Notes: generated from the letters alone by a model not told the origin. Shown: positions 523-28,955, counted from the stretch's first letter. The stretch is 64,000 nt of DNA from Mytilus californianus (GCF_021869535.1 NW_026262690.1:83142001-83206000); one strand, 5' to 3'. Numbers and translations are program-made.

Positions 523-1482
523 ATGAAGGGTTGTCTAGCTCTTCTTTGTCTCCTTCCAATCTGTCTATCGGCTCCACTATCTGGTAAGCACATAAAATCT
601 ATATAATGAAGAGAATTTAAAGTTTGAATAGGATTTTCGTTTTGTGAAAATACAAGCCTTGGGTTTCGAATAACTTAGTAAAACTTCATGTTATTAAGAA
701 AGGCAGTCTGTAACTATAAACTTATTTAAAATTTGGAATACAAGTACTAATATTCAAGCAATATTATATTATAAAGTGTCCATACATACTGCTTATTATT
801 GGAGGGAGCGGTCTTTTAAATGATTGTCATTAGAGCAAAAGACGATTGGCTCGTGGTAATATTTCTGATTTCTTACCTCTCATAAATCTATTTGGAATAC
901 ACTACATATAAATTTTACGATTTCCTACTAAGAGACTTCCAGACTAAAGATAAAAGAAACATACAACTTGTTCGTAAAGATGCAATTATTTCAAACTAGT
1001 TTGTAAAATATGGTATTGTGAAAAAATATTTTTACAATGTATTATTGATTGTATAAATATATTCCGATTTAGATGGGACTTTTGACCCGAACGCTCTAAA
1101 CAAGGATTTTGGTACTGGTGGTTTCGCCGGCAGTGGTGGATTTGGAACTGGCACAGGTGGTAGTTTTAATCCAAACGCTTTGAACCAAAACTTCGGAGGA
1201 GGTGGATTCGGCTCCATGTCAACATTTGCCGCATCGACTGTTGCTCCTTCTGGGACAACTGAAACATTTGATCCTAATAAAGTAAACAACTTCGGTAGCG
1301 GAACTGGATTTGGAGGAAGTGGTTTCGGTACAGGAAGTGGAAGTGGAACTGGAGGTTTTGGTTCCGGAACTGGTTTCGGTAGTGGTGGAAGTGGAACTGG
1401 TACCTTTGACCCGAATAAACTTAATGGTGGTACTGGAAGTGGTACCTTTGATCCAAATAAGCTCAATAGTTTTGGAAAATAA
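523..1482 (+). CDS. Secreted Gly/Ser/Thr/Phe-rich FDPN-repeat protein 1 (156 aa, 2 exons: 523-583, 1073-1482)
   Basis: Exon 1 reads MKGCLALLCLLPICLSAPLS+G then gtaag at 584. The acceptor tttag ends at 1072. The phase-1 join gives ...APLSDGTFDPNALNKDFG..., in frame with track ORF 1180-1482. Five F[DN]PN motifs; ends NSFGK*; AATAAA at the stop. Confidence 0.88.
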
Positions 1483-1869
1483 ATAAATTAAAGTCATTGT
1501 TGTTACATATACATTTAAGATTATTTCATTTTTAAAGTTTGATTAGTTATAATATATTTAACAAGAGGTCATCGACATAAAGTTATGTAGTTCACAAATC
1601 AAAAATGAACTGACACACACCCGTTTTAGTTTAGAAACGCTATGGAAAGAATAACAAGTGTAACAACAGGGTAGGCTTCTCAAGATGAAATAACACCATT
1701 AGACTTTTGTTTTCGTGCTTGGTTGCTGTGTGTCGTGTTTGTTTTTCGTTTATTGTTTTGTCATAAAAAGGTTCAGGATATTTAATATAGCTAGCTTATT
1801 CCGTCTAATTTTTTTTTAGAGAAATGAACGCATGTTATATTCAAACTCATCACAGATACCAAAATTAAC

Positions 1870-2475
1870 ATTTTGTACGACAGATGCGCGTTTCGTCTAC
1901 AAAGACTCATCAGTGACGCTCGAATCAAAAATGTTAAAAAGGCTAAATAAAGTACGAAATTGAAGAGCATTGGAGACCCAAAATTCCGAAAGGTTTTTCC
2001 AAATACAGCTTAGTTAATGTTTTGTTAACAGTTTATTTATGATTATGACCATATCAAAGATAAATTTTCAAGTCAACACAGAAGTGCTGACTTCTGGGCT
2101 GGTGATATCCTTGGGAAGGAAACCTCCAACAGCAGTGGCATCCACCCATTGATGATCATTGATTCTAAATAAACTCATCATAGATTTCAGGATTGAAATT
2201 TTGTACGCCAGACGCACGTTCCAAATAAAGTAGCATCGAGGACCCCAAATTCCGAAAGGTTTTGCCAAATACATCTAAGGTAATCTATTCCTGGGGTAGA
2301 AAATCTTTAGTATTTCCTAAAATTCAAATTTGTAATAACAGTTAATTTATAATAATGACCATATCAATGATCATTTAGAAGTGCTGACTACTGGGATGGT
2401 GATACCCTCGGAGAGGATACATTCACCAGCAAAGGCATCGACCCAGTGGTTGAAAATAAAACTCATCATAGTATG
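1870..2475 (+). repeat. Interspersed repeat family C, two tandem degenerate copies
   Basis: The motif gactcatcagtgacgctcgaa..gaagagcattg..gacccaaaattccgaaaggttt..ctgactNctgggctggtgat recurs at about 14665, 15390 and 42690, and inverted at 4245-4400 and 35150-35565. Confidence 0.7.
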
Positions 2476-2669
2476 AGACCTTTTGTCAGCTTCCAAGTAA
2501 AACAAATTGGTTAAAATTAAACGTCGCACGGAGTGGCAGATTTCTCATCGAGGGGATGAGACATTTATTGGAAAAGATTAGTTTGCCTACAAGTCTGTCT
2601 CAAACTCTGTTCTTAATGGAAACAAGCTAATTTTAAATCAAAATGTGAATAACACATATCGTTACATTA

Positions 2670-3425
2670 TTAAACAAGATGAAATGCTATTGATTACTAA
2701 TGACCCCCCCCCCCCCCTCCATTATAAGTGTTCAAAACATAGGATTTGAATGAGCACTGGTTATAACACCACCTCACATAATATGATCGTATGAAGCGTG
2801 ATACCAGGAAGTTCTGATTTGTAGTTCATGAGAAAATTATGACGAACTATTCATATGAAGGCTATCATGTGAAAGAATTTAAAAGTATTTGGTAAACAAG
2901 AAGTTGATGAGCAGTGGTTGTCAAAACTCCCCATGTCGTATAGCATTCACAGAAAATTGGCACCCCTCCCCCCCCCCCCAAAAAAAAAAAAGAGTCCATG
3001 CTTTGGTATGGAAAACCCCAAAAATAATTAGAACCAAAAATTAGAATGGAAAATGCACATTATGTGGTAAAGGTTCTGAGAAAGTCTTATTAAATTACGA
3101 CGAGGGATTTTGGAGCAAAAGCGGATATAAATGTGTACTAAAGTGGCAAATAAGAAAAAGTCCCTGTCATCACAAAGCAAACCCATGAAAGCATTCAAAT
3201 GAAGAAATGAAATAGGATATGTAATTTACATCATGTCAGTAAGTTTCTGTGACAGTTTCACAAAATTTTGACATGCAGTTCTGGAACAGTTGTGGATATA
3301 AAAGTGTGATAGAAGAACGAACGAACGAACGGACGGACGGACGGACGGACGGAAGGACAAACGAACAAACTAACAGATGAACGCTCTCCCCGAACACTAT
3401 ATACAGCCCGCTTAAGCAAGCAGGA
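2670..3425 (+). mobile_element. HINE/pearl-like non-autonomous element (degenerate)
   Basis: Starts aaacaag, contains poly-C tracts and an (ACGA)n(ACGG)n microsatellite at about 3315-3360, and has an imperfect 3' hairpin. The layout matches better-preserved copies elsewhere in the window. Confidence 0.5.
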
Positions 3426-4709
3426 TTATGGTAAAAGAAAAGATGAAAAGGTATGACAAGACAGGAGAATTATGTCATTTTCCTGTAATTTCTGAGTCTA
3501 ATGGTCGTAATGAGGTAAAAAGTAGGTCAACTGAAACAAAATTCATTCTACATCTGTAATTAATAATGAAAACTATTCAATCTCAAATATAAGTACAATA
3601 TTGCAGCTGAAAACTGTCATTGCCATGAAATTATTATGTCGCGGGTAGCAGGGCCATAACTAAGTCACAGTAGGTTGATTATACCAAAACACATATAGGT
3701 AGTATATGTATGAGCCTCCTCATGGGATTTTTGATTATGTGATTACTTGGCCGTTTTTATAGTGATTATTTGATTACCAGACCAACTATTTCATGATTGT
3801 TTGATTATTTGATAATCTAGGACTGTATTTTTTATTATTTGATTATCTAATTTAAAAAAATAATTAATGATTATGTGATTATATTGGCAAAAAAATTGTG
3901 ATAACTTGGACACCCCCATGAGGGGCCTCATGTATATTGTAACTACAAGTATATATAATTTAAAATTAAAAACAAAACATGAATAACCATTAAAAATTAC
4001 TATTTTGTCGCGTTTTATCACAAGTCAGTCTAGCTAGCGTCAGTCTATTCATAGTAACGGTGGTAAAGAGTGTTTGCTTGTGGTATCATAGGTTGCAATT
4101 TTAAAAATAGACCAAACCATGATGATACTTTGAAAATGGTGGCAGGTATACGAATGAATTTCACAAGACAAATACTATGAGTGATGACTCATTACCTTAA
4201 ATATGGTCTCTTCAGCTACAAAATGAAAATAACTTTATAAAGTGTGTGCGTCCGAGGCGCTTTTCTTGATTTACCTTCATCAGGAACCCCCAAACCTAAA
4301 TATTTCAAAGCTAGGCCTGTATAAATATAAATACTAGAAACTATAGAAGCTATCTGACCAAAAGGGACCAGTCCCCTAATATAATAGCTAATTTATCTAA
4401 GATGAAGTTTGTCTGTGGGAGTTGGAACCCTTAGTTTCTTTATATTTTTTATTTGTCAAGAGGGTTTTAGAACAGTTATAATACGTATTTAGAACAAACT
4501 GTTAAAATAATAAGAACTGGGCATTTAGTAATGCATATCAAATGAAATTTAAAAATACAACAGGTTTCATATAATCTTTAATAACGACTGATAAAAGACA
4601 AAAATAACAAATAATTTAATGTGTTGAACACGTGTCTGACTGCGACCTGATGATAATCTCTCTGTCTTATCTGGCAAACGTACCAGCAGGTGGAATTCAA
4701 CGACGAGAC

Positions 4710-6358
4710 ATGTTTGCTAAAATGAATATGTTAATATTATTAACTGTTTTTATTCCAACATGTTATTGTGGTAAGATTATATTTTCTTTATTAAATGCAC
4801 AAACACAACAATAGAAATATGTTAAAGGGTTCAAATTCATGATCGATTCCCTAAAAGGTTGGTATTTAGTTATTACGTTTTCGATCATAGGCGAAATGTT
4901 GGAAAAGGGTGGGGGGGGGGGGGTTGATTTCACTGATTATACCTTCTTGTCGATCTTTAAAATAAGCCTAATAGGTTATATTCATTGACAAGCTGTTTTT
5001 AAAATAGATTTCATCAATTTTTTTCTTAATTTTGATAGATCAGTAAACCCAATGCTTTTTTTAATATTAGCTGGTCGAACCCACCATCTAAAATCAAAAT
5101 CTTCGGAAACTGCCATTAACAAGTCAAGAATATGACAGTTGTTTCCAATTCGTTCCGTTGGTTGATAAAGTCACACGTTTGATTTTGTCAGATATTATGG
5201 ACTTGCCCTAATTTTAATTTATCTTGAAGTTCCGAATTTTTGTTATAACTTTTTATCAATTGGTCTAACGGCTAAGTGTTTTCTTTTTTCTGGATCTTCG
5301 ATTTTCTTAAATTGTTTTGGGGTTAGTATATTTGTAGCTTCTTATTCCTTTACATTTTTGAAAATGGTCATTTCTCTTCAGGTAAGCCGAAACTCAGAGA
5401 AATAAAAAAAGAAAGCCACCAGAAATAAAAGTTCGATTATCAAATGCAGGCTTAACTATGCATGTTTCTTTTCAAAAAGCGCTGAAAAAACATGTTGTTT
5501 TCTTGATCATTTGTCTCTTTTAAATAGTCTTGAATTATGCTTTTGTTTTGCCTGTCATTTTTTTAAACAGTGCTTAATCGAATTTTAATGCTATATGTGT
5601 TTGTAACGTGCATTTTGATTTGATAACACTTATATTTCAGGGCATCAATTCCACGATTGATGGTATGAAATTGTTCATGATTTTACAATTATGTTTTCTT
5701 TCAGCTGCATATAATTGAGGTACAGTATTTCATTTGAAGATTTGCGGACATCAATTTTTGATATGAAAGTTGCAAATATCCGATAACTTTCACAGCTTAC
5801 TTTGGAAGTTGCAAATATCTGATAACTTACGCAGCTTACTACATGTCACCTCCATTTCAGACAGCCATGCAGTTTTTGCTCGCTTATCTTAAAATACAAA
5901 ACTACAAATAGCTGTGGCATATGATTTTTTCTCCAAAATATCATCTAAAAACGAAAAATAACAAACTACTTTTAAGTACTTGTTATAAGGTAGAGTTAAC
6001 TTTTTTTTGTAATTCTATCCATATACTGTAATATACTATTTTTCTATTTGTAGCTTCCTTGAGCTTATTCAATGCAAATGGCACAGCAAGTTTCAATCCT
6101 AGTCAGATGTCAGCTGGTCAGTTTAGTCCAAACTCTGGAGCTGGAACATTTGACCCAAATAAATTAGGAGCTGGATCCTTCAACCCTAATAGTCTTGGAT
6201 CAGGAAGTTTTAATCCAAACAGTGTCGGATCCGGAAGCTTTAATCCAAACTCTATGGGAGCGGGATCGTTCTCTCCAAATAGTATGGGATCAGGCACATT
6301 CGATCCGAACAAGGCCCCATCTGCAAACTTTGATCCAAATAAGTTTGGAAAGAAATAA
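4710..6358 (+). CDS. Secreted FxPN decapeptide-repeat protein 2 (121 aa, 2 exons: 4710-4770, 6054-6358)
   Basis: Exon 1 reads MFAKMNMLILLTVFIPTCYC+G then gtaag at 4771. The acceptor tttgtag ends at 6053. The phase-1 join gives ...CYCASLSLFNANG..., in frame with ORF 6059-6358. Nine FxP[NS] motifs, mostly at 10-aa period; ends FDPNKFGKK*. Confidence 0.88.
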
Positions 6359-6964
6359 AAGCATAACATATCATTTGCAATGATGTTTCTTTTATTAACG
6401 GTATACGGTAACGGTATATTTCAATCATGGAGTTAAATCCCTCGGTCATTATTGTATGTTTAAGAAACCTGCCATGTTTAGTAGATGAGATCTTACGAAC
6501 TATTTTCTGCATAAAATCACACTAGGGAAACAATCAAAATCTAAAATTGAATATTTTTACAACTAAAATCAATTGACCATGTACATGGCAAATATCTTAC
6601 GATTTAAAGAAAAGGATTTTCGTATGCCTTACATGCGTTTTAAGGTAGTTTCAATACATTTATTCCAAATGGTGAAATTTTTTTTTTAATTGTTCTTGGT
6701 TTCACCAAATCATACATATTTCTTACACTTACAATAATGTACCATTTTTATAGATATCAACTTCTAAAATCAATTATCTTAAATCGGATTTTGAGTTAAA
6801 TGTCGCTGATCTCTATTCTTTCCTCCCATCCTCCCTCCCCAAAACTTTTTACTTATATCAGATCTGACAAAGAATATATCTGAAATACGTGAGTAAATAG
6901 GACACGATTCCAGAAAAAATCTTAACATCTCAATCTTAACTGAATTAGACTTATCATCGAATTT

Positions 6965-7535
6965 GTACTAACACGAGCAACACAACGGGTGTCACATGTG
7001 GAGCAAGATCTGCTTACCATTTAGGAGCACCTGATGTCATCCCTTGTTTTGTTTAAAAGGGCCTCGTGTTTCTCTTGCTTTAATTTTGAGTGATGTTCTT
7101 TGTGTTTTTTTAATTTTTCAATGTCTTTGTTGTTTCTACTGGTCACAATCTTTTCTATCCTACTGTCTTGAAAAACCTGTTACAATTTCACATTTGGCAA
7201 AGATTCAGGGTTAGAAAATTTACATGACCGATGGTTTACGAATTTAACGATGTCTTTGGGGCTAGATAAAATCAATTAATTCACTATTGCGTGATGCCTT
7301 ATCTCTTGATATAACTTATCACTATGTTTTATAGGAGTTACACGACAGTTGTCACATGTGGAACAGGAGCTTTTGCTAACCCTTCCGGAGCAACTGGGGA
7401 TTTTTGGCAGTGTTCGTATTGCTCAGTCTTCAGTGTTCTATTTTCTGTTTTGTAGACTGTTGTCGTTTTTCGTTTTTTACCATGGCATTGTCAGTTTATC
7501 TTCTACTTAAGAGTTTTGATATCCCTTAAGTGTCT
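6965..7535 (+). repeat. Interspersed repeat family D (two copies; third at 20480-20715)
   Basis: Shared text gtcacatgtggagcaggatctgcttacccttccggagcacctga..gtgttcgt[ag]ttgctcagtcttc..ccatggc[ag]ttgtca at about 6990, 7350 and 20495. Confidence 0.7.
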
Positions 7536-8818
7536 TTCTTATCTCGTTAACAGCTGCCAATACGGCGTCGATATCGGTCATTCGGTATATCGAGAAAATT
7601 ATCGTGAAAGAATAAGTAATAGTGGTAAAGCATTGCGAATGGATCGTGAAAGATCTGGTATAGGATTGTGAATGAAATCTTATCGAGAAGACACATGCAA
7701 CGTCAGTAAAAAATCTAATTTAATCAATTATAATGACAAATATTGGAAAAATAAAACTGTCTGTCAAATTGGTTCAACATTATGATCAGTATACGAGAAA
7801 AATCAATTCTTAAAGTACACCGTTTTTGCAAAACTACAAAAGGCTGATTGCTCATCGAAATTTCAGAGAAATTAAAATGTAAACAAACATGATTTTTTTT
7901 TCAAATTTTTCATAGAGGCCCCAAAAAAGACAAGTGTAAAACCATTCAAACAGGAAAACCCGGTCTAATCTATATAAAAAACGAGAATGAGACACACTTA
8001 TGAACCACATCAACAAACGACAACCACTGAACATCAGGTTCCTGACTTATGACAGGTGCAAACAAATGCAGCGGGTTTAAACGTTTTAATAGGCGCCAAC
8101 CTTCACCCTACCTTAAACAATAGTGTTACATCACAACATAGAAAGACACACTGTAAAATATCAATTGAAATGGCTTAACTCAATCAAAAGACATATTAAC
8201 AAAAACACGTGAACATACACTGAACGAATAAATTTGATCTATGACACAATGTAAATACAAAATTAATAAAGCAAGGGGGTTAGATGTAAAACAATATCAG
8301 AAAGACGATCATAACCGTTACCTTGGACAAAATGCCGCCCAATAAAATAACGTACACAGGTAAATAAAAATAAGTTTGTTGTAAGGTATACAGTCATGGA
8401 GTACGAAAATAAATTTTACAAAATAAATAATTTTGTTGTTCCTAGTACGAGAACAAAAGTGAAAATTTATCGTCATACTAAACACTTAACAAAGATGGTA
8501 TATATTAAAAATAGTGAGACTAGATATAACACTGAATAAGTAAACATTAAATAACAAAAATACATTACACATTGTATCAACAGGTCAAATTAACACGAAA
8601 ATACGATTTGAGAGTACTCGCAGTTTAAAAGTAAAAAAAAATTAATAATAAAAAAATCATGCATCAGAGACTAAAATCAACTAAAACACATCCCAGGGAT
8701 TTAGTGTTTTAACGTCATGGACAGTCAAGGAAGACATGACTTGTGCAAAGCCAAAATAAATGTATCGACAGGCAGTAGGATAGTTAGGAGTTAACCTGTT
8801 AATAAATATGTATAATGT

Positions 8819-8850
8819 AATATATATATATATATATAGATAGATAGAGT
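8819..8850. repeat. (TA)n/(TAGA)n microsatellite
   Basis: Directly visible tatatatatatatatatatagatagatag. Confidence 0.9.
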
Positions 8851-10224
8851 AATCTCTATATAGAAAATGAACGTGGATGTGTATTTATACATCCCAAAAA
8901 TACGTTTGAAAAGAATACAAATTTAGTTATGTTTTAATTTGCTGATGACAAAATCGATATTTGTGCCAAGGTAAACTATATTAAAAGATCTAATTACAAC
9001 ATTGGTAAGATAACCTTTATTAATAAGTTTGTTTAAAGGTTCATACATAAACTACTTTTCTCTTAAAAATATCGTTCAATATTACTATTTGAAATAGTTT
9101 TTAAATTTATTTTGATTTAGTCTAATCAAAAACTTTGCAAAAATGGTAATATTTGTAAAAAAATTATATTCCGGATCGTGAAAGATCGAGTACCGTATTT
9201 TGATGATCGTGAAAAGGATCGTGAAAGATCTGTTGCCTCTTATTCGTTATTGCACGAAAACGAACAAATCTGTCTTTAAACAAACGATAATTTATATTGG
9301 TCACATTCCAATATATCATGACATATTTGAAACTTAATCTTTATGGTGTCAGATAGTCCAGTAAAATATTTTTTTTGTAATTTATATATATATATATATA
9401 CAAGTCTAAATTGAAAACAACGTTCAAACCTATGATTGCGTTGGGTAAAAACAGCAATTTTAAGAGTGAAAAAATATATTTTAACAAAACGCATTTGACT
9501 AACAGGTCGAACAACTGATGTTCTTAAACCCTGCTGTTTGCCATTGACGATTGCCAAACAAATTGATCACAAGGTGTAACAAAATGGATCTCTATATTAA
9601 TTTAATACCAAGTAGAAAACAATAAACTTGCGGCAAAGATGGTAAACCACAACATGAGGTGCTAAATTTTTTACACCATATCCGGATTTCGACAATTAAT
9701 GTCTCTTCAGTGATGTTAGGGATCGAAAAGTATTTGGAAGGCCATTTAATTTACCTCAATTTAGGATAGACTCTTGAATTTTAAAGAGTCAAAATAGGAT
9801 GAACGGATTATATAAACCGGAGGGAAAATATAATACAAGCCCAAACGAAATAAATATAAACAAGTCTAAATTGAAAAAAACGTTCAAACCTATGATATAT
9901 ATATCCATATTTAGACCTGTTTTCATTTAAGAGACAATGCTACATGTAACTAGGCATCCAAGATAATAAGACCTCCAGGAGTGTAAATTGTCGAAAAGTA
10001 AATATCTTTGTATATGCATATAATGGTAAATGCATCCACGAATAAATGAAGCGAGAGGAGGTCTGGTCTTCCGCTGAAAATATCTTTATGTGTACGTTTT
10101 TGTTTTTGTAAAGAGTAAGGCAAAGAAGCTATCTCATTTGATTTTACATACATGTGTATCGAAGATGTTCTTTTCATTAACAATACAAATTTTCAGTCTG
10201 ATTGGGTCCAATAAATAGTCATGA

Positions 10225-10570
10225 ACCAGAGATTACAGACACCACATTTACAGCTTCCGTGGCCTCATTTTGGACATATACCCCTATTTTGACTACAGCG
10301 GTCATCTCAATACCAGCGTCATTGACAAACGAGATGATTTCAATTATGAAAATTAATTATAATTTTTCCTCATCTTAGCAGATTTACCTACTTCATCAGC
10401 GTATGGAGTATATATTTCTCAGTTCATATGATTTTCAGGAGCTTGCATCTGCAACTCAGAGTTTGTAAAATGCTTTCATTGCATGAGCAAAAATTAATGA
10501 ACCAGGGTTTGGTGAAAGAACGTCTTGTAACGAGTTTCAAAGTTGTGTGCACGATTTTTCAAATTAGTGC
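10225..10570 (+). pseudogene. Decayed reverse transcriptase fragment (Penelope-like type, C-terminal part)
   Basis: Frameshifted translation gives EITDTT..., DKRDDF, AYGVYISQF, KLMNQG. These are the same blocks as the longer relic at 46790-47690. Confidence 0.65.
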
Positions 10571-11009
10571 GCACCAGATTAAATCTCCGGTAAACGAAAA
10601 TATTTATATTTACATGACACTTAAGGTGCTCCGTAATTATGCTTTACCATACTGACTGTACTATCAACTACAAACACATTTTGTTGGTGTCTTTGTTTGA
10701 TCTAATTGTTAATTTAGTGTGTTTGAACGTTTAATTCAGCTGTGTTGTATATCTGTGGTGTATGTTTACACAATTTTGACTGCTGGATCCCAGATATGGC
10801 CACGTTAACCAATTAAGTCTATGTGGGTTGCTCACCTAATTTGGTAATATAACCATTAAAGATACAAAACGTGATTTTTTCTTAATGGTTCGCTAGGATT
10901 TTGTCGCCTTTTGTGTTTTCTTAAAAAGTACTTGGTGCATAGTATTATTAAAGAAGTTGAATCATTTTGACAGACATATATTTTTTTTCTAATTTGTTGT
11001 TCCACCTTA

Positions 11010-11442
11010 TAATTACATTACATGTATGTTTCATTATAATACGTTATTTTGATTGTCTAACAGCAATCTCGCGTCTGAAATGCACTTTGGTCAACGCTTT
11101 TTGTAAATTTATTGGGGTGTAAAAGCGTTGACCGAAGTACATTTTGTATGAAGCGCGGAAGCGCTTCATTCTAAAAATGTGCGCACGGTCAACTCTTTTA
11201 CAACCCTATGAAATTACTAAAAGAAGCATTCAATACTTCAATTACATTTTTTTGCTAGGATCATGAAAACACGATTTCTATCAAGTTTTTCTTTTATTTA
11301 CCTGTGCACTTTATTGTAGAAGCTCGTGTCGTTACATTTCATTTTGAAATTTTGAAATGAAGGTTAATTTCAGAATGACGCGAGATTGCTGTTAGCCAAT
11401 CAAAATAACGTATTATAATGAAACATACATGTAATGTAATTA
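11010..11442. mobile_element. MITE with ~66-bp terminal inverted repeats and internal palindromes
   Basis: taattacattacatgtatgtttcattataatacgttattttgattg[t/g]ctaacagcaatctcgcgtc at 11010-11075 is inverted at 11378-11442 with one mismatch. Internal inverted aaaagcgttgacc/ggtcaacgctttt blocks. Confidence 0.85.
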
Positions 11443-12801
11443 TTTCTTAAATGAAAATACAGTAGATTTTTCATAGATTTTGAAGTAGAATTACACTTAA
11501 TTGCTTTCACGAACCAATCGCAATGATTGACCACGGCACCGTTAATTATTCTTTCACGATCATTTTTCTCAATATACGGATTGACACCCGTGATATGGTA
11601 TCCCTTAAGAAAAGATTAATCTTAAAATGAAAATACTCGAAAGTCATGAACATTTCAGTACATATTATAATCAACTTTAGTGGTGAGATCGGAGTATCGC
11701 TGGTGTTATTGCTCCCGGTAATCTAGACAATTTTAAAATAAAATAAAAAGAGAGTAATCGATTTTGCAACACTTTTCGTTAGAATAACGCGGAATACAGG
11801 TTGTCAATTAAACTCCATTTAACGTCAAATATGAATCAAATTACAATCGTTGTTATAATTTTAATTTGGGCTTTTAATTAATTATGATATTTTCTCTACC
11901 TAAAACGAAATATTTAAAAGTATAAAAGGTTTAAACATTAAAGGTTTCATCACAATTGAATATCTATGAGGTGTAATTTGGGTTATAATTCTCATACAAT
12001 TATCTAAATAATTATTATGTATTATGAAGTCATTTATAATACAGTTTAATAGTGTATGCATAAAGCATGTATGCATTCTATAGAAATCTTTTTTTTTACA
12101 ATAGGAAGTTAAAAAATGACAATAACACTTTCTAAATTTGGTGCGTGTGAATTGCTTTCAAGAAGTTGAAATAATCATAAAAGATGATTTCTTTTTATTA
12201 CAGCGGATGACTTAGGTTGGGCCTCGATGGTGCAGATTGTGAAGAAGGAATCCGGTCTAGATTATCCCGACTAAAAAAGCTTCTACTTCTAATTTGAAAA
12301 TGGGTTCATAGACCAAAATGTTGTGTTTAGCACCAGTGCTGCCAAAAGCTTAGCTAGAAGTCTACAATGCACAGGTGTAGCTTTATCGAGAGAAAAAAGC
12401 AAAAGATTCCTCCGTACTGCCTACTGGTGCTAAGGACAATCTTTAAATTTCAGCGCAGTGTATGCTTTGATGAGTGTTGAAAACCTCATTGTTAACTTAA
12501 CATGAAAAACAACAATGAAAGCTTCTGGGTGTGCCGAGTATGTTTAGCGATTTTGCATCATGGATTTATACACCATATCCCTTCTTTTCCGTTCTAAATT
12601 TGGAACGAAAATTTCTGACGACCTTAGATAACCGATTTAACTTACTTTTTTTCAAATGCACGACATGGAAGTTGAAATATAAATGAATGATATTATAGAC
12701 CACTAGGCCAGCAGCTTTGACAGCTGCAAAGATTATTTTACAACCATTAAAGATACTAGTATTTTCATGTTTTTACTATTGTTCCTGGATAGACTTGAAA
12801 G

Positions 12802-15161
12802 ATGTCGTCTTATGTAATGCTCCTACTTTTGCTTTCTGTGGTAATGGGAAGACCATCTATAGGTAGGTGGATATTATTTTAAGCATTTTTTACTCCTACA
12901 TTCTATTGATTACAGACTAAATCTCATATTGTTTAGGGCTGTCAGAGACTCTAACTATTATGAATAAATGTTTCTTTTGTCAAAGTATATGTGGTGTTAA
13001 AAAAAAACTAAACACTGTTATGCAATACTTTCCCATATACCCACAACAGAAAACTAGAGGCTCTAAAAGAGCCTGTGTCGCTCACTTTGGTCTATATGCA
13101 TATTCAACAAATGACACTCTCCAACATTGTAGGCGATAATAGGATTCATGACAAAAATCTCTGTTTTGTTGATCTTGTATTGCTGATCATTTACTCCGTT
13201 TAGTTTCTCTCTATCTTTAGTTTTTGCTCAAAACACAAAAGAGGGTAAAACAAAATCCTAAATTAAGGGCAATCACTCCTATAAAGAGTTACAGTCTACT
13301 AACTCTATCGGCAAAATTTGACGTGTTAGTAGATCATGTCTTGCTAATGTATTTTGCTTATTAAAGTTTATATCTATCTATTATAATTTTTATCATATAA
13401 GGGACAACGCAAAAAAAACAATATGGTAAAAATCATCATTAAAGGGCAATAACTCCAATAAGGAGTCATCGGACGATTTCCACCATATTGTATTACTAGT
13501 AATTGTAGATCTTGTCTTGCTGATCATTTTTGCCTATTTAAGTTCCTATCTATCTATTATAATTTTTAAGATATAAGGCAAAACGCAAAAATTTGGTAAA
13601 AATTTGTCATCAAAGGGCCATAACTCTAATAAGGAGTCGACTGACGATTTCATTCAATAGACAAATTTTTAGAACATGTCTAGCTAATCAGTTTTGCATT
13701 TTAAAGTTTCTCTCTATCTATTATAGTTTTTTCAAGATAAAAGGCAAAAATGAAAAAAATGGTAAAATTTGTGAATTAAGGACAATAACTCCTATAAGAA
13801 ATCGTCTGACAGTTTTGACATAAATGGACAATAGGTAGAGCTCAACATTCTGAACATTTTTGCCTTGTCAGATATTCTTTATTTATAACGGTTTTCAAAA
13901 TAATAGACAAAACTTGCATTTTACCCCTACGTTCTATTTTTAGCCATCTTGGTTGGCGAGCGGGATCATCGGACACATTTTTTAAATTAGAAACCTCAAT
14001 GATGATTGTGGCCAAGTTTGATTAAATTTGGCCCAATAGTTTCAGAGGAGAAGACTTTTGTAAAAGTTAACGAGGACGACGACGGAGACGACGACGGACG
14101 ACGACTGACGACGGACACTGACGACGGACGCCAAGTCATGGGAAAAGCTCACTTGGCCTTTTAGGCCAGGTGAGCTAAAAATGGTTGCAGATTCACACTA
14201 TGATGAATTAAGGCAAAATGTTTTTACCTACTGAATAAAAGCCTACAAACTATTGTTTCATTTTTGAAATACATAAACATACAAAACACATACACATACA
14301 CAAAAGAAAACACAACATAAGAAGCAAAAATATATAGCAATATAAAATTTCCAGAAAAGTATTTTAGTAGCAAATTTGAATTGCAACTGTAATTTCCTCT
14401 TTAACTTCAATTAGCAAAAGGCTTGAATTAGCAGAGTGGTGAATAAACCAAATGAAAATACAGCATCTTTGTATCAATGTTAATAGTTCCTCTGTACAAA
14501 AATCTGTCAATGGTAATACTTATAATTTGACCATCTTTGCATTCTTGGAAATAACACAAGATAAAAGTAATACGATATTTGAATATACATCTACCATTAT
14601 CAAACTGTTTATTATAGTAAGAACTCGTCACAGGTACCATGTTTAAATCATGTATTCCAACACGCATTTCGTCTACACAAGACTCATTAGTGTCGCTCTA
14701 ATCAAAATCAATCTATTGATTTCGACATGTGGCAACTTGGCTTAAAATAACCAATCGGAGAAACAAAAAAAGTCCAATAAAATAAAGTATTTAATGTTTT
14801 TTTCACAGAAAAAAGACAGACTTCCAACACTAATCAACAGCTATCACCAGACCAGTTTATCAATCCCAATTTTACATCCAGTGGAACTAATTTTCAACCA
14901 CAGCAATTCGTGAATCCATCATTTCAACAGAATGGCAACAACACCAACCCAAATTTCATGCCAAGTTTCATCGATCCTTCACAGTTCTTGAAAGGAACCG
15001 GAGGTACAGGTAGTGGTAGTTCATCTGGGAACAGTTCATCTACTTCCGGTGGAATTTTTTCTCCTCAGCAGTTTATCAATCCTTTCAGTTCTGGTGGAAA
15101 TTCTTCAAGTTTTAGCTTTATTGACCCCGGAAAGTTTATCGGAAAAAGGACAGTTAAGTGA
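12802..15161 (+). CDS. Secreted Gln/Asn/Ser-rich F[IV][ND]P-repeat prepropeptide 3 (137 aa, 2 exons: 12802-12862, 14809-15161)
   Basis: Exon 1 reads MSSYVMLLLLLSVVMGRPSI+G then gtaggt at 12863. The acceptor ttttcacag ends at 14808. The join gives RPSIEKR|QTSNTNQQ..., in frame with ORF 14910-15161. Ends FIDPGKFIGKRTVK*. Confidence 0.82.
13090..14181 (+). mobile_element. HINE/pearl-like element inside the intron of secreted gene 3
   Basis: A 5' gctcac subterminal motif, 3-4 degenerate ~170-bp tandem units (aagggcaataactcc..), a (GAC/GACG)n microsatellite at about 14075-14130, and a 3' hairpin agctcacttggcc-tttta-ggccaggtgagct followed by aaaaa. Confidence 0.75.
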
Positions 15162-16452
15162 TAACGTTCAATCGTATGTCATAAAAACGCTAAATACTGA
15201 ACTCTGTCTTATTACTGACTGATATCAAAATTTTAAAGTAATCTTTTTCATAAATTAAGCCATAATGAATTAAACAAAGGGACTAGACGAGATTTTCGTT
15301 CAAGTGGTCATTGTGAACCTCCGGATAGCACAGATGTATAGGAACACACATATTTACTTCGATTCAAAAACTCATAAAAAATACCTTATGAGTTTGTTAC
15401 GCCAGATGCGTGTTTTGTCTACAAAGGACTCATCAGTGACACTCGAATAAAACAACAATAAAAGTCCAAATAAAGTATGAACATTGAATTAGGGGATTGA
15501 TTTCAGAAGTTAGATTTCCAACCAACATCTGCACCTACCTCAGCTAGTTTCCTGTAGTAGCGACCCTGCATTCCAAATTATGTGCCGCGTTTTATTTCCT
15601 TGTTCATGCTAGTGGTCATCCTGTTGGCAGCTGCACTGTGGAGGTTTTTCATTATGTGCTTTAGTTTTATGACATATGGTATAGATAGCCTTTTTGCATA
15701 CGTTAAACTAGTTTAACCCCACCAATAGTGTGCCTGTGCCAATTCAGGCTATCATAGACCATGTGTTCTTCAAAGATGTTTGTCTTGGTTTGTAAATCTG
15801 GGTTTTTGTCGTCGGAGTCGGGTGCTGGTGGTTGATGTGAGCTGTCGTACTGTGTGGTATTTTTGGCGATTCCTGTTATCCTCATAATGTTTATGTTTGA
15901 TGTAGTTTGGTTGCTGCTTCATTCACGTATAACCCTATTTTTTTTTTATTCATTTTCAACAATCAAATAATCTAATAATAGTATTAAAATATAAGAAATG
16001 CCAACCCTTTTCAATGAAATTATCTAAGTTGTCTTTATTCTTCTTACCACAACTAGTCTTCTTAACAATAAAACATGATCGCATTTGCACACAAAGAAAT
16101 GTGAAAGAGAAAACAAGTCAAGTAGCACGCGAGTAACAAGAAAAAAACAACCAGAGATACAACTTACGGGTTTCAACAATAGACAAATGTGAATGCAATA
16201 TGTCATTCCTTTCCGAGTCAGGATTTTTTTAAATAAATATTTTTACTGGATTTTTTTTTAATTTAAAAAGAAAAATTGCAATTAAATTGTTGCTGTGTAA
16301 ACCAAATTATATCTTCATGTCGTGAAAGGTCATCTATCAGTTATCTATATTATTAGTGTCATACGTCCAAGATTAAGGTTCCGTGGGATGACAGATGTTT
16401 CGTTAATATAATTTAAGACAAAGTTTAAAATTGTTCACCCTCTTTTATCACC

Positions 16453-18869
16453 ATGAAGACGGCTACATTTGTACTGCTGGTAGTATGTACCGTGCAGGGA
16501 TCTCCAGTTTATAGAGGTGAGTCTTCGTACATTTATTGCTGACGACAACATAAAAATAGTGCTGATATTAAATTGTCCAGTCTTTCAGATGCATTAGTCA
16601 ATGCTTCTTGTATTGTCTAGTTATGGATGATATATAAAAGGAGATCTAGTGTATATGTCGATGAGATAAAAACACAACCAAACAAACACAACCGACGTTG
16701 TTTTACTTAGTTTGGGGTCGTAAGTCATTATTTATTGCCATTTCACTGGACTGAGACATCGGCCTTTTCGAACTACATGTATTTGGAACTTGCGTCTATG
16801 ATGAAAATGGTATAAAAGCTTTATGGGTGCAAGATACCTCACAATCATTTACAGAATCGGCAAGGTTTAAGTAAAAGCTAAATATCCATTTGGAAAATTT
16901 ATATTATTTAAAGTTAAAATTGTTTTTAGACTATGTAAGACCATTAAGTCTGTGCCTTTTAGACACTATAAGACTATTCTAAGTATTTCCGTTCCTTTCA
17001 GACTGTGTAAGACTTTTTCGTATTACCGTTCCTTTTGTTCCTTTCAGACTGTGTAAGACTTTTTCGTATTACCGTTCCTTTTATTATATGTCAAAATGTT
17101 TAATAATATCTTTCCTTGCAGAATATGTAAGGCGAGCAAGTAGTCTCGGAAACTTCGACCCAAATGCCCTGTATCAACAACAGTCACAGTCGGCACAATC
17201 GTACCTGAAGGGTTCCGGAAGTGTAGCATCTCCTGGTGGATCTGTGCAGACAGGAGGGTCAAGTAGTGGATCTACGGGTAGTTTTGATCCAAATGCTTTA
17301 TTCAAACAGCAATCACAACAAACAAGTCAGGCATTATCAAGTAGTTCACAGCAATCATCTGGTAGTTCATCAGGTCAACAGTCAAGTGGAGGAAGTGCAA
17401 CTTTTGACCCGAACGCTGTTAATACAATGACATCACAACAAAAGTCCCCACAAACGATGAGTGGACAACAGTCTGGTAGTGGTTCAACTGGAACATTTGA
17501 CCCAAATGCCCTGAACAGTAAGATACCTCAGCAACAGCAAAGTGGTGGAGCACAACCGCAAAGTTCTGGTGGATCACAACAGTCAGGGAGTGGTTCAACT
17601 GGAACATTTGACCCAAATGCCCTGAACAGTAAGATACCTAAGCAACAGCAAAGTGCTGGAGCTGGTGGAGCACAACCGCAAAGCTCTGGTGGATCACAAC
17701 AGGCAGGAAGTGGATCAACTGGAACATTTAATCCGAATGCCATGAACAGTCAGATGTCTCAGCAACAGCAAAGTGCTGGTGGTGGTGGAGCACAACCGCA
17801 AAGTTCTAGTGGAGGTGGAATGTCTTCGGGTAGTGGTGGATTCAATCCTTCAGCTTTGAACAATCAAATGTTACAACAGAATCTGAAACAAATAGCCAAC
17901 AGTAAACCAACTGGCAGTAGCAGCTCTATGTCTGGAGGCAGTAATTCCATGGGAGGAGGCAGTAGTTCAATGGGAGGAGGCAGCAGTTCTATGGGTGGAG
18001 GAAGTAGTTCTATGGGCAGTGGCGGAAGTAGTTCTATGGGCAGTGGCGGTAGTAGTTCTATGGGCAGTGGCGGTAGTAGTTCTATGGGCAGTGGCGGTAG
18101 TAGTTCTATGGGTAGTGGTGGTAGTAGTTCAATGGGTAGTGGCGGTAGTGGTGGTAGTAGTTCTATGGGCAGTGGCGGTAGTAGCTCCATGGGCAGTGGC
18201 AGCAGTTCTATGAGTGGTGGTTCAAGTGGAGGATCAGGAGGGTTTGATCCAAATGCACTTAACAGTCCAGATAAAAATAAGATTGATCCGTCAATGTTTA
18301 TGAGTGGTGGAACAAATGCTCTAGCAAATAAGATGAGTGGAGGCTCTGGTGGAAGTTCTAGCAGTGGATCACAAATGAGTTCAGGTGGTTCACAGATGGG
18401 TTCGGGTGGTTCACAAATGGGTTCAGGTAGTTCACAGATGGGCTCTGGAGGATCACAGATGGGTTCAGGTGGTTCCCAAATGGGTTCAGGTAGTTCACAG
18501 ATGGGATCAGGTGGTTCACAGACGAGTTCTGGAGGATCACAAATGGGTTCTGGAGGGTCACAGATGGGATCAGGAAGTTCACAGATGAGTTCAGGTGGTT
18601 CTGGTGGTTCATCAAGCAGTAGCTCTCAGAGTGGAAGTTCAGGTGGTTCTGGTGGTTCATCAAGCAGTAGCTCTCAGAGTGGAAGTTCCGGCGGTGGATC
18701 GTCAGGAAGTTTTGACCCAAATAAGCTGAACCAGCAGATGATGTCTCAATCAAATATGATGAACCCATCTCAGTTTATGAGTGGAACAAATGCAGGTGCT
18801 TCTTCCGGGTCAATGGGAAAAGGACTTCAGTACAATCTGTTCAATCCAAATCAATTTGTTGGAAAATAA
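16453..18869 (+). CDS. Large secreted Gly/Ser/Gln/Met-rich FDPN-repeat protein 4 (603 aa, 2 exons: 16453-16516, 17122-18869)
   Basis: Exon 1 reads MKTATFVLLVVCTVQGSPVYR+G then gtgagt at 16517. The acceptor tttccttgcag ends at 17121. The join gives SPVYREYVRR|ASSLGNFDPN..., in frame with ORF 17088-18869. Ten F[DN]P[NS] motifs; ends FNPNQFVGK*. Confidence 0.9.
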
Positions 18870-21575
18870 AACTTTGATGAAAGTATTAGGGTTATTACTA
18901 TGTCATAAATCATTATTCAAATGGTTGAAAATACATTTTTTATACGTTACTGATTGGGCAATACGTCAATTGCGAAGTCGCTGAGATTAAACAATGCCTT
19001 GTGTATCATTTTGTCTGCTCACATGCAGTACATATAGTTAACTTAATAACAAGCTGATAGATCTGCTGCAACAGGAACCAAAAACTTATTTCTGCATAGT
19101 TAAAATAGAATTCTTAATTATTTACGAAGGTCAAATTTCAGGTTCTCGTCGCTATATAGCCGCTGACGTAACGTTAAACAACAATCAATCAATTTATCAA
19201 TCAAAAATCATTTTTGAAACAAATCGATTAGAATATGAGCTGAAAAGGCAGATATTTCAGTTTTACCCACTGTTCCATATACCGCATCTAAACATTCTTA
19301 AATATACGTTTTAAAAATGCGATAATATGTAAATGACAATTTTTACTGAGGCTTTTTTGTTGATCAATATGTAAATTATATGTCTGCATTGATAATTGAC
19401 AAATAAATGTCATGTTTACATTTTAAATGGCATTAAATGAACATGTAGATCGGATAAATCATAAGGATAAGTACTATGGCACATGCTTCATAAAGGACCT
19501 TTAAACAGTTAAATAAATTTACTTTTCATTCTAATTTTTGATCATAAATCCATTTACAGGAAAATATTGCTGTAATTAATACAGCTAGGCGACTATGTGG
19601 TCACGATCGAAACACAAACTCTCTTTTATACCTTATACAATTCTTTAATATATTGCGAATTAAAAATCCGTTTTGATTTCAATCAAAGCTCTTCATAAAA
19701 CGTACACTCACTGTAAATAAACAAGTTGATGTGAAAACCAAAACTTATGTGTTCAATAGAAATGAAATATTTATATTTATGCAATAAAGTGATTCGATTT
19801 TGGGTCGTCTGACATTTAGAAAAATATAAACACCCGATACACACAAGGAAAATAGTAAACATTCTAATGAAGCTAAATTAAATTTTCTTTGTATTTTATA
19901 TTTTTTTGTCATGAAAAAAATAATTTCCGAGTGATTAACCTCCGGCCATTGAACGCGTTTGTTCAATATGAATAAAGGAGATATACTCCATACGGCCAAT
20001 AGACACCAACAATCGACATTGGAACCATCAAAATGCACACAAAAACATACACTACCTTATCTAGCATATTGTAGTAGCGAGCACATATTTTGAACCAGTT
20101 TCTAAAGTATGTACCTTTTTTCTATTGTGTGTTTTGGTTTTAAGACAAATGGTCAAAAAAGGAAAAGGAGGAGGTTAATTCCCACGTAACACTGGTTTAA
20201 CCGAATTACATTTGAGTGTCTGTACCAAGTCAGGTTAACCGAACCATGTGTTGTTTGTTGTTGTTATGTATTTGTTTGTATGTTTGTTTTCTCGAAGGAG
20301 TCGGATGTTTGTTTTTGATGTGTTCAGTTGTAATGTGCGGTATTTTTGGTGATTCATGGTATCCTCTTTTATGAATAATTACTCAACAATAACGGCGTAA
20401 AAGACAAAAATACTTACACAAGTACAAACGCACAAACACAAAAAAAAACAATGGTTGAAAAGTTACATCGTGTCAAAGAATGCTCGAAGTTATTGTGGAG
20501 CAGGATCTGCTTACCCTTCCGGAGCACCTGATATCACCTGATATCACCCCCGGTTTTTGGTGGTGTTCGTGTTGCTCAGTCTTCGGTTTTCTATTTGGTG
20601 TTTTGTGTACTGTTGTTTGTCTTTTGGTCTTTTTCCTTTTTTGCCATGGCGTTGTCAATTTATTTTCGACTTATGAGTTTGAGTGTCCCTTTGGTATCTT
20701 TCGCCTATCCTTTTCTGAAAACAAGCTCAACTGTTGACAGTATGCAATCTTATACTCAAACATCGTTGTATAATGGTTCAAAAACATCATCTTTTTGGAT
20801 GAATATTATCAATCTATATACAGCGCGAGCAAAACCGAATACGTGCTTTGAAGAATGGACGAACATTGACAAATACGCATGTGAAATGTAAAATGTAAAA
20901 TAAGTTCAGTTTGTATTTCCAAGGTAAAATTTTATTTGACGTAAAACATAAGTAAAAGGTAGGTTTCCAAATATAAACGCTAAAATAAAATAAATTAAAT
21001 TGCTTTGTATATATAAATGCTAAAATGAAATATATTTAATTGCTCGCTTGAATCACATATATAAAATGTCTTTACCCCTTCATCTTATAAATAGTACCTG
21101 TGTTTTATTCATAAAAATGGTCTTCATGAATATCAAATAATACTTTCTGATTTAAGAGTTATTCACCTTTATCATGAATAACACAGACGTCTCTAATTCT
21201 CTATTATTTTCTTTCAACCATAGCGTTTCCATATATAACCAATGAAAAACTCTAAACCAGTTTTTTCGTGTTGTTTTATAATTTAGTTCCTATATCCGTT
21301 GTCTGGTATTTTTTAACTATTGCCTCATTCGTGTACAACATCAAAAGTTGCAGTGTTGCCTTGGGCTACTCGAAATCCATACGATTTGATAGTCGTAACA
21401 TCCAAAACTTTTCAAAACAAGTTTACATAGGAGATTGGATGTCAAAATACTACAAGAAACGCGGAAACAATCTGCCGTAATTCAATAACTAAGGCTGGGT
21501 TTCTCAGCAATATCATTACAATATTAAACGAAAAAAGCACCACTTCTAACAATGAAATATATATACGTGTCCATT

Positions 21576-22220
21576 TCAAACCGTCATGGCATCTTCTTCA
21601 ATTGGTTCACGTTTGTAAAACATCTGAAGTTTATTGTGTAGGACATGATCACTAACACTTAATCGTTTTGAAAGAATTAATGACCGTGAAATATGTGGCG
21701 TTTTCGCTTTCTCTGTTTGAGGTAGTGTTTCTAACGGCGCTAGTTTCCTATTCCTCCGGCCTCTGAATCCTTTAAGGTGATGGCAGTAAAACCGGTCACA
21801 GAATGGATCATCTGACCGAGTTGACGGTATTCCTTTAATTCCAATGGCTTCTGTCGAATATGCTTTAAATTTTCCTAAAGTATGCGTTTCTTTTTTCTTT
21901 GCAACATTCAGTCTTAGAGATAGAAAGGGTAATTCGTCCATATTTGGATATCTTCGTAAAATGCGTTCAAGGTCTCTTTCTACCACGTCTTTTCTGCTTT
22001 GACCGATCCTTAATGCATCATTTTTATGTTTGTATATTATTTTTTCTTGAACACGTAATTGTTTGTCTAACATTCGGTTTATCACTTTGACTTTTGACCT
22101 TGCATCAGAATCCAATTTATCATAAATAGTCGGCAAACAAGCATTGTTTATAGGAGGCGCTGCAACAGTCAATCCACCTCCCTCTTGAAATATTGCCGAA
22201 TTTAGAAAAGAATCTTCCAT
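21576..22220 (-). CDS. Uncharacterised basic protein, 214 aa, uninterrupted CDS (paralog A, ends DAMTV)
   Basis: ATG-initiated 214-aa ORF, collinear with the ORF at 39251-39904 (AAPPxNNACLPxIYxKLD, QEKII, PNMD, PFCxRFYxHH, DAMTV). Protein-level conservation between two copies supports coding. Confidence 0.8.
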   Translation of the reverse strand: MEDSFLNSAIFQEGGGLTVAAPPINNACLPTIYDKLDSDARSKVKVINRMLDKQLRVQEKIIYKHKNDALRIGQSRKDVVERDLERILRRYPNMDELPFLSLRLNVAKKKETHTLGKFKAYSTEAIGIKGIPSTRSDDPFCDRFYCHHLKGFRGRRNRKLAPLETLPQTEKAKTPHISRSLILSKRLSVSDHVLHNKLQMFYKREPIEEDAMTV

Positions 22221-27197: not shown

Positions 27198-28955
27198 ATG
27201 GATTTACGAAATTCTCGTCATAATTCATATTCGGACGTTCGGATATTACATGATGAACCATATATGCCACTAAGTGCCCGAGATTCATACGGTATACAGA
27301 AGGCACCAGTGATGATGTACAATCAGTATGGAGATGATCTGGATTATTTAGACAAAGCCTTGTATTTAGAAAACAGGATGAGAATCCAAAAGAACATCAT
27401 CAGCCGTCACAAGACCGAGGCTGTGAAAACACAACACAAAGAGGACAAAGTGTTGTCAAAACATCACAGTATGAATGATTTTCAGAAACCCCAAAAGTCA
27501 TATTCAAGTTTGTTTAGTAAACAAAATAACAAATCTTACAAAGGACAGGGAAATAATCAAAGTGGTGGTCCTAATGTGGAGGATGTATGGATTCCGAAGG
27601 ACATGCCCTTGGATAGGAACGACCTTGATTATCAGATCCCTGAAACATTGGATACAGCAAGGGGTAAAGCGAGGTATGCTCTAGTCAGATTGGATAGTTA
27701 TGAACAATCAAATGTTTCACAAATGCATTTGGAGAGTGTAAATCCGTTAGTTTTACCGACATCATTCGCGAGTCAAAATATGCCCGTAACTTACAATGCA
27801 AAAACGGGCTTTCCTAACAATCTAGTGAAACGACATTCAGTCGATCCGAACAATTTCATTGGATCAGAAAATCGTGAAATTCTTGAAAAGGTAAATAACG
27901 GTCATGAGAATATTCCAGATGAAACGGAGACATACAGCAATAAAAAGGAAGCTACATACAACAGCAGAAGGTTAGTCAAGAAAAACTCAAAAATCACGCT
28001 TGATGACTTATATATGAATGAAAAAGATAAGAAACATCCACTGATGTCACGAAAATCTAAACAATCCTTGAAAGTTCCTACAAAGGAACCCGGAAATGAA
28101 ATTGACAAGATAAACTATGAAGAATTAGACCAAAATATGAAATTAGAGCGCACACAAGAAAGACGTCCATCACGTGATACGAACCTTACTGTTTCTAGGA
28201 AAAGCTCGACGGTCAATAGTCGTCAGTCTACCATGAGTAAGATTTCAAGGAAACAAAATGATACACCACTTTCTGTTCGATCGGTACCTTCTTCTGCTGC
28301 AACTGCAGCCCCCGTTTTAAAACATTATCGTTCGAAGAAACGTGTAAACAAGAAGAATGGAAAGGATGATGAAGTTACCCAAACTACTGATACTATGGTT
28401 ATATCTGATAGAACAAAAACTGAAAATGAAGTACGAGTGAAGAAAAAGGACACACGACAACAAAATCATTCTCAATTAACCGATGCTGCTAAATTAGATT
28501 CGTCGCCTCCTACAAAGAAACAACATAAAACCGTGAAATCAAACAACTCAGTGCCGTTGGAAAACTCATTTTCTAAAACGTCCGAAAATAACGTTGAAGG
28601 GAATAATTATGGAAGAAAAAACAATAAGATTTCAGAAGACAGAACCAAACAAAGAAATTCTAAGTCCAATACACAAAAAACGGACAGGAGTGATGTATCA
28701 GATGTAGGCAAAGCAAAAAACAAGATCTCAAATACAGAAAATTCAAAATCAAACAAAGCAAATGCGAATGAACAAACGAGAAAATATGCAGATAAAAATC
28801 GAGGTTTAAGGAAAACAGATTCGTTCAAAATGATGGGAAACAGTTCCGAGTTTTTCGGCTACTGTTCTGTTCCCGAGGAGGAAGGCACAACTAAAAAACC
28901 AAAATCAATACTTAAGAAATCAAGGTCGGATCCAGATAGACCAGATACCGCATAA
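27198..28955 (+). CDS. Uncharacterised 585-aa Lys/Ser/Asn-rich, largely low-complexity protein, uninterrupted CDS
   Basis: A 1.76-kb stop-free ORF in AT-rich DNA. The N-terminal segment LENRMRIQKNIISRHKTEA aligns by eye with paralogs A and B. No domain recognised. Confidence 0.8.
   Translation: MDLRNSRHNSYSDVRILHDEPYMPLSARDSYGIQKAPVMMYNQYGDDLDYLDKALYLENRMRIQKNIISRHKTEAVKTQHKEDKVLSKHHSMNDFQKPQKSYSSLFSKQNNKSYKGQGNNQSGGPNVEDVWIPKDMPLDRNDLDYQIPETLDTARGKARYALVRLDSYEQSNVSQMHLESVNPLVLPTSFASQNMPVTYNAKTGFPNNLVKRHSVDPNNFIGSENREILEKVNNGHENIPDETETYSNKKEATYNSRRLVKKNSKITLDDLYMNEKDKKHPLMSRKSKQSLKVPTKEPGNEIDKINYEELDQNMKLERTQERRPSRDTNLTVSRKSSTVNSRQSTMSKISRKQNDTPLSVRSVPSSAATAAPVLKHYRSKKRVNKKNGKDDEVTQTTDTMVISDRTKTENEVRVKKKDTRQQNHSQLTDAAKLDSSPPTKKQHKTVKSNNSVPLENSFSKTSENNVEGNNYGRKNNKISEDRTKQRNSKSNTQKTDRSDVSDVGKAKNKISNTENSKSNKANANEQTRKYADKNRGLRKTDSFKMMGNSSEFFGYCSVPEEEGTTKKPKSILKKSRSDPDRPDTA

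Follow-up and report, generated by a model that had tools for sequence, protein, structure and literature searches.

Amidation is generally seen as modifying short peptides of signalling and defence; ends of the form X-Gly-basic are trimmed by carboxypeptidase E-type enzymes and converted to X-amide by peptidylglycine alpha-amidating monooxygenase (PAM) in the regulated secretory pathway. The Gly is the amide donor in such a signal, and the basic residues only expose it. Molluscs have both PAM and prohormone carboxypeptidases. Here, we describe four tandem paralogous genes, G1 to G4, in a stretch of 64,000 nucleotides from the mussel Mytilus californianus (NW_026262690.1:83142001-83206000, hereafter the window), which is AT-rich (30-39% GC), contains no N and lies on a 127-Mb contig of an assembly of 1.65 Gb in 175 contigs. 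What is new is that end signals of the amidation type occur on long, disordered and secreted proteins, which belong to an undescribed bivalve family. On balance, the sequences favour the reading that G1 to G4 belong to a bivalve-specific orphan family of secreted, disordered proteins that are trimmed by a carboxypeptidase and amidated by PAM.

Classical amidated precursors, for example those of the molluscan FMRFamide type, resemble G1 to G4 in having a signal peptide and a product end made of a hydrophobic residue, Gly and one to three basic residues, with the Gly fixed and the basic residues variable; some members of the G1-G4 family also have dibasic sites and a Gln after the N-terminal cut. 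They differ in carrying multiple copies of short peptides, whereas each of G1 to G4 encodes a single low-complexity chain of 100 to 580 residues without homology to any peptide family (Pfam, HMMER, ESM Atlas). Shematrin-type matrix proteins, known from shell proteomes and marked by XGnX repeats, are likewise secreted, Gly-rich and repetitive with a basic C-terminal end, but their RKKKY-like end clusters are not known to be preceded by an invariant Gly, nor are they known to have FDPN motifs. The nearest published parallel within the genus is the myticalins of Mytilus gill, a non-neural tissue, for which amidation by carboxypeptidase E and PAM has been predicted and which are, like G1 to G4, Mytilus-lineage, secreted, Cys-free and linear, with a phase-1 intron, a dibasic site and often a Gly-Arg end (PMC5577615). 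Myticalins are, however, cationic Pro/Arg-rich peptides of 23-42 residues with an anionic C-terminal propeptide, whereas the G1-G4 chains are near-neutral and Gly/Ser/Asn-rich, lack an anionic extension and show no sequence similarity to them.

The four genes lie on the + strand between positions 523 and 18869 and follow a common two-exon plan: a short exon 1 codes for a hydrophobic signal peptide and closes with a GT donor in phase 1, and a long exon 2 encodes a Cys-free low-complexity chain rich in Gly, Ser, Asn and Gln, in which spacers of Gly, Ser and Gln set apart short repeats of the form F-[DN]-P-[NS]-x-(L/V/F). Judged by eye, the exon-1 peptides are hydrophobic and have small residues ahead of the predicted cut; the peptides and their donors are kept in M. 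galloprovincialis (G1 to G4) and M. trossulus (G3, G4). The four C-termini given in the preliminary description of the window all read exactly as stated there, each in the last exon of its gene:

523..583, + strand: G1 exon 1, signal peptide MKGCLALLCLLPICLSAPLS plus one base, with the phase-1 donor G/GTAAGC, the same donor as in M. galloprovincialis
1073..1482, + strand: G1 exon 2, a 135-amino-acid (aa) Gly/Thr/Phe-rich chain with five F[DN]PN(A/K)(L/V)N..FG units
1471..1482, + strand: G1 end, F(1471-1473)-G(1474-1476)-K(1477-1479)-TAA, stop at 1480-1482, reading ..FDPNKLNSFGK-stop
4710 (or 4722)..4770, + strand: G2 exon 1, signal peptide (M)FAKMNMLILLTVFIPTCYC plus one base; the start that is conserved in M. 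galloprovincialis corresponds to the Met at 4722
6054..6358, + strand: G2 exon 2, a 100-aa chain with nine GxGSF[NSD]P[NS] units
6344..6358, + strand: G2 end, F(6344-6346)-G-K-K-TAA, stop at 6356-6358, reading ..FDPNKFGKK-stop
12802..12862, + strand: G3 exon 1, signal peptide MSSYVMLLLLLSVVMGRPSI plus one base
14809..15161, + strand: G3 exon 2, beginning E-KR(14811-14816)-Q
15138..15161, + strand: G3 end, I(15138-15140)-G-K-R(15147-15149)-T-V-K-TGA, stop at 15159-15161, reading ..FIDPGKFIGKRTVK-stop, i.e. ..FIDPGKFI-GKR-TVK-stop
16453..16516, + strand: G4 exon 1, signal peptide MKTATFVLLVVCTVQGSPVYR plus one base
17122..18869, + strand: G4 exon 2, a 581-aa Ser/Gly/Gln/Met-rich chain beginning E-Y-V-RR(17130-17135)-A, with ten FDPN-type units, GSSSM and GSQM arrays and 11% Gln
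18858..18869, + strand: G4 end, V(18858-18860)-G-K-TAA, stop at 18867-18869, reading ..FNPNQFVGK-stop

An end of this kind is expected by chance with P = 0.0009-0.002 per protein when the last 8 residues are drawn from the protein's own composition. The 35 internal dipeptides of [FILVM] and Gly in G1, G2 and G4 are followed by Lys or Arg only once, at an MGK in G4 that lies 16 residues from the end. Dibasic pairs are similarly confined, occurring within G1 to G4 only in the first 1-4 residues of exon 2 (KR in G3, RR in G4) and in the C-terminal signal.

Sequence searches were run with exon 2 alone as the query for every gene. In Pfam, no score for any of the four chains exceeded the gathering cut-off; the scores of G2 against PF05287 (PMG; 20.3, cut-off 29) and PF25296 (Decapeptide repeat; 18.8, cut-off 45) reflect low-complexity matches. 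A word-indexed search with G1 returned four unnamed or misnamed proteins, from Crassostrea virginica, Magallana gigas, Dreissena polymorpha and Pinctada imbricata, and a profile built from these relatives (A1) retrieved 14 proteins at E <= 0.001 in a HMMER search against 1.84 billion representatives. All but one of them carry FDPN-type repeats (13 proteins, comprising 4 named bivalve proteins and otherwise unnamed fragments), the remaining match being an unrelated repeat protein. Within the mussel's own genome, matches to the A1 profile are confined to this locus. The corresponding word-indexed protein search with G4 gave no match, its candidates being dominated by low complexity, and the ESM Atlas held nothing usable for G1 or for residues 1-270 of G4. 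No description of the family was found in the literature searched by ortholog accession, by motif or by PAM in mussel glands, and a paper on oyster larval adhesive contained none of six related terms, including keratin and glycine-rich. An AlphaFold prediction for G1 with A1 gave a predicted local distance difference test (pLDDT) score of 55 and a predicted template modelling (pTM) score of 0.16, with short helices on DPNALNxxFG; these low values predict a mostly disordered chain.

The ends of the orthologs and paralogs are as follows, G3 being 92% identical to the annotated protein of M. galloprovincialis and 90% identical to that of M. trossulus (P0035, P0036):

G1, M. galloprovincialis: FGK-stop
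G1, Crassostrea virginica and Magallana gigas: FGKK-stop
G1, Pinctada imbricata: FGRK-stop
G1, Dreissena polymorpha: FGRR-stop
G1, a further bivalve assembly (L011): FGRRR-stop, codons AGA CGG CGA TAA
G2, P0012 (metagenome contigs), M. galloprovincialis and M. gigas: FGKK-stop
G2, Pinctada: ..HFDPSVFG-stop, codons GGC TAA, with Gly the last residue and 0% Lys plus Arg in the exon
347-aa paralog, Pinctada: ..FDPNSFSG-stop
G3, M. galloprovincialis and M. trossulus: FIGKRTVK-stop / FIGKRTFK-stop
G4, M. galloprovincialis and M. trossulus: FVGK-stop
G4, M. gigas (syntenic ortholog): ..NPSQFI-G-RKR-FVQ-stop

The ..FDPSVFG end of the Pinctada protein P0020 was confirmed on its locus, and in M. gigas G4 the C-terminal site accounts for 3 of the 7 basic residues among 532 aa. 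An X-Gly followed by basic residues or by the stop closes the product in all four genes and at about 20 ortholog and paralog ends, in keeping with the amidation-signal form proposed earlier. In the alignment of the G1 family (A1), the terminal Phe and Gly are invariant against a mean column identity of 44%. After the Gly we observe K, KK, RK, RR, RRR, RKR plus FVQ, KR plus T[VF]K, KR plus GNM, or an immediate stop. The invariant element is a hydrophobic residue, Gly and then either a stop or a putative basic cleavage site. That the Gly stays constant while the basic residues exchange, change in number, gain neutral tails or vanish is what one would expect of an amidation signal, and we regard the Gly-(basic) end as very probably a conserved functional signal. 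The preliminary description had proposed that the end is under selection, a proposal that would have failed had orthologs lost the Gly-basic end; the Gly is kept throughout, and the hydrophobic-Gly pair is invariant over at least 7 bivalve taxa and several paralogs with a variable basic part. The ends of these long, unfolded repeat proteins of the secretory route thus share a textbook amidation signal that does not change although nearly everything around it does, and it is conserved over mussels, oysters, pearl oysters and the zebra mussel. That span of bivalves amounts, by our own estimate, to hundreds of millions of years. As a separate observation, exon 2 of G1 in M. galloprovincialis (L013 2291-2720) is split over two frames in a locus with 2032 N, either by an assembly indel or by a real frameshift, and its ..NSFGK-stop is intact.

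The same variation bears on whether the terminal Lys is kept for a reason other than processing, namely as part of an AATAAA poly(A) signal or as a cross-linking residue (through transglutaminase with the Gln-rich G4, or through lysyl oxidase). The terminal AAA, the TAA and the following A do form an AATAAA that overlaps the stop in G1, G2 and G4 (1477-1483, 6353-6359 and 18864-18870) and is kept in M. galloprovincialis and M. trossulus, i.e., in all three Mytilus species; this hexamer may be what directs polyadenylation, in which case the 3' untranslated regions would be very short. The 11% Gln of G4 would suit cross-linking. G3, however, ends in TGA and has no overlapping hexamer, Arg is used elsewhere (AGA CGG CGA in the L011 assembly, RR in Dreissena, RK in Pinctada, RKR in oyster G4) and some members lack any basic residue. 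Both the poly(A) overlap and Lys cross-linking were rejected as the cause of the terminal Lys on the grounds of these Lys/Arg exchanges and Gly-stop ends, and we regard this explanation as scarcely credible. A required terminal basic charge is likewise an ill fit with ends that stop at Gly and with ends that carry neutral tails.

The minus strand upstream of the window harbours two further relatives. The first is an 888-aa protein containing numerous FDPN/FNPx motifs, the second a polyprotein gene that is the nearest relative of G1 to G4:

~-31000 to -28200 (window-relative), - strand: polyprotein gene with FDPN/FNPx motifs and Gly/Ser spacers

The polyprotein shares with G1 to G4 these motifs and spacers and the hydrophobic-Gly-[KR]R signal, and it is syntenic with G1, G2 and G4 in M. 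gigas; it differs in that the signal is internal, repeated between modules and then followed by Gln, whereas G1, G2 and G4 use it once, at the end. The mussel modules end in ..FFNPSAMTAG-RR and ..FFNPQNQLG-KR and restart with Gln, the last one reading ..NQLG-KR-GNM-stop, and the oyster modules end in ..VG-KR, ..VG-RR and ..LLG-RR-stop. Since the polyprotein carries the same signal internally, cleavage is the only obvious reading of it there. The M. gigas locus (L014 1460-21650) contains the polyprotein, a 967-aa protein, G1, a G2-like and a G4-like gene in synteny with the mussel, with G4 inverted; no counterpart of G3 was found in the 22 kb read at this oyster locus.

A second set of putative cleavage sites is found at the N-terminal end of the chains. 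The KR site after the signal peptide of G3 and the RR site of G4 are each present in three species, and G2-like genes of oyster and Pinctada have KR-Q and RR-Q sites at their N-terminal ends. Gln after a dibasic cut is the usual pyroglutamate precursor; M. galloprovincialis G3 has Leu in place of Gln after the KR, so that a pyroglutamate cap is not universal. None of the N-terminal dibasic sites has Arg at P4, and they therefore look like neuroendocrine-type dibasic sites and not like minimal furin sites.

Under the amidation reading, the signal peptide would be removed first, and a convertase would then cut at the KR or RR that lies 3-6 residues into exon 2 of G3 and G4, which in G3 would expose a Gln that could cyclise to pyroglutamate. 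A convertase would also cut G3 after GKR. A carboxypeptidase of the E/D type would strip the C-terminal Lys and Arg residues, and PAM would convert the exposed Gly to an amide, giving products that end in Phe-NH2 (G1, G2), Ile-NH2 (G3) and Val-NH2 (G4). The residues seen before the Gly (F/I/V/L/A) suit PAM. The purpose we favour for such capping would be the removal of the end charge and the shielding of long unfolded extracellular chains from exopeptidases. Secretion may run through dense-core granules, as the preliminary description suggested, and the C-terminal end may itself be functional. The gene models, secretory signal, predicted disorder and end signal with its deep conservation are observed or computed here, whereas we infer every enzymatic step and the purpose of capping. 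The mussel genome contains at least 25 exon-level matches to Cu2_monooxygen (PF01082, PHM/DBH family), mostly in three clusters on contig C88 (3.43-3.75 Mb, 33.6-33.8 Mb and 109.0 Mb) and also on C1 and C121, which represent either a DBH-like gene expansion or multi-PHM PAM genes.

RNA contigs confirm the junction of exon 1 with exon 2 in G3 and G4, those of runs X1 and X8 coming from a mussel that is ~5% diverged. The G4 splice joint 16516/17122 (GT..AG) is present in an X1 contig. For G3, contigs of X1 and X8 have loose ends at 14807, and the letters preceding this point spell the 3' end of G3 exon 1. A contig of run X2 (18788-18914) is continuous across the G4 stop, showing that the frame is not spliced away there. 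Contig depth in X1 is 180 for G3 and ~45-50 for G4, both genes are also found in X8, and each of 17 runs of the related mussel, from six studies, carries about a tenth of the sampled words. Two side observations concern the same genes. In the GSSSM array of G4 (window 17900-18150), contigs of the related mussel have in-frame deletions of 24, 3 and 9 bases, so the repeat number of the Ser/Gly/Met array differs among close relatives. The G3 intron holds a multi-copy repeat (window 13000-14200) with a GACGACGGAC-type microsatellite at ~14070-14130, which has very high depth in 4 of 4 runs, including RNA run X21, and numerous rearranged joints; it resembles a mobile element that is either transcribed or very abundant.

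Several observations weigh against amidation of these chains. To our knowledge, practically no amidated polypeptide longer than 100 residues has been described, and the largest member of the cluster (888 aa in mussel, 967 aa in oyster) lacks the signal. The sole RNA run of the window's own species gave zero reads on G3 and G4 in the 6% that was sampled; given their presence in the runs of the related mussel, expression of the two genes looks tissue-restricted. One X1 contig leaves G3 after ..GGA AAA and reads TAT TAA, i.e., ..FIGKY-stop (window 15141-15149), unlike X8 and two sequenced Mytilus genomes, which keep GKR-T[VF]K; the 28 divergent nucleotides of this variant have no occurrence in the window. 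Gly is, moreover, the commonest or second commonest residue of the chains (12-31%) and also closes internal repeat units, after their last hydrophobic residue, so a chain that stops at a unit boundary would end in hydrophobic-Gly without selection for amidation.

This last point leads to the main rival explanation, in which the proteins end at a repeat boundary with an optional basic tail and are not amidated, the basic residues serving for charge (binding of anionic matrix, mineral or mucus, or solubility) or being trimmed only. The terminal units of G1 and G2 are indeed in register with internal ones, FDPNKLNSFG-K corresponding to the internal FDPNKVNNFG-SGTG in G1 and FDPNKFG-KK to FDPNKLG-AGS in G2, and the terminal F-x-P-x-x-F-G being the last repeat unit, the Gly is partly explained by repeat register. 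For this reason, the earlier proposal that the whole FxPx[KQ]F..GK stretch forms a terminal signal holds only in part: F-x-P-x-x-F-G is the last internal repeat copy, while only the stop right after the Gly, whether or not basic residues intervene, sets the terminus apart. The chains also carry few charges, so that even one to three basic residues at the end would count in the net charge. On the other hand, two Pinctada members without basic residues still end in Gly, the basic residues are non-terminal in G3, oyster G4 and the polyprotein, where a neutral tail or the next module follows, and a charge tail need not sit right after Gly at every one of ~20 sites. We consider the repeat-boundary explanation unlikely, although it deserves more weight than any other alternative weighed here.

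If the chains are amidated, they might alternatively be neuropeptide or hormone precursors. The Gly/Ser-rich parts would then act as spacers, and monobasic cleavage would free a short amidated C-terminal peptide as the active product, e.g., GLQYNLFNPNQFV-NH2 from G4 after MGK. The signal peptides, dibasic sites and Gly-basic ends would agree with this, as would the ..SMGK of G4, which lies 13 residues before the terminal Gly and is kept in three Mytilus species. G1 and G2, however, have no internal basic cleavage site save the Lys of the FDPNK motif; there is no series of short copies set between dibasic sites, such pairs being limited to the chain ends; and conservation extends along the whole chain in the repeat motifs and is not limited to the end. 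Homology to a described peptide family is likewise lacking in Pfam, in the HMMER search of 1.84 billion representatives and in the ESM Atlas. Contig depths of 45-180 in assemblies of 47-97 Mb from several studies suggest bulk expression, which is a weak argument. Taken together, precursors of short peptides are improbable.

A tentative further reading, possible though less than even in our estimation, is that G1 to G4 and their cluster relatives are bulk exocrine products, a "sticker-and-spacer" material outside the cell or a mucus component found only in bivalves, with unfolded chains end-capped by neuroendocrine-type machinery with a C-terminal amide and, where KR/RR-Gln is present, a pyroglutamate. 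If this were so, they would be by far the longest amidated polypeptides known (about 100-570 residues), and PAM would have a role in building or stabilising extracellular material and not in signalling. The amidation chemistry itself, if true, would extend the substrates of PAM to chains an order of magnitude longer, would make end-capping a way to stabilise extracellular disordered proteins, and would offer a handle on a conserved cluster of bivalve genes whose product may be a biomaterial.

Downstream of G4, the window contains three further open reading frames (ORFs):

27198-28955, + strand: 585-aa ORF rich in Lys, Ser and Asn, without a match in a Pfam scan
21576-22220, - strand: single-exon ORF of 214 aa
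39251-39964, - strand: single-exon ORF of 237 aa

The 214- and 237-aa ORFs, which gave no match in a Pfam scan, are paralogs with 35% identity (E 5e-40). Both terminate in ..DAMTV-stop, which looks like a PDZ-ligand-type end.

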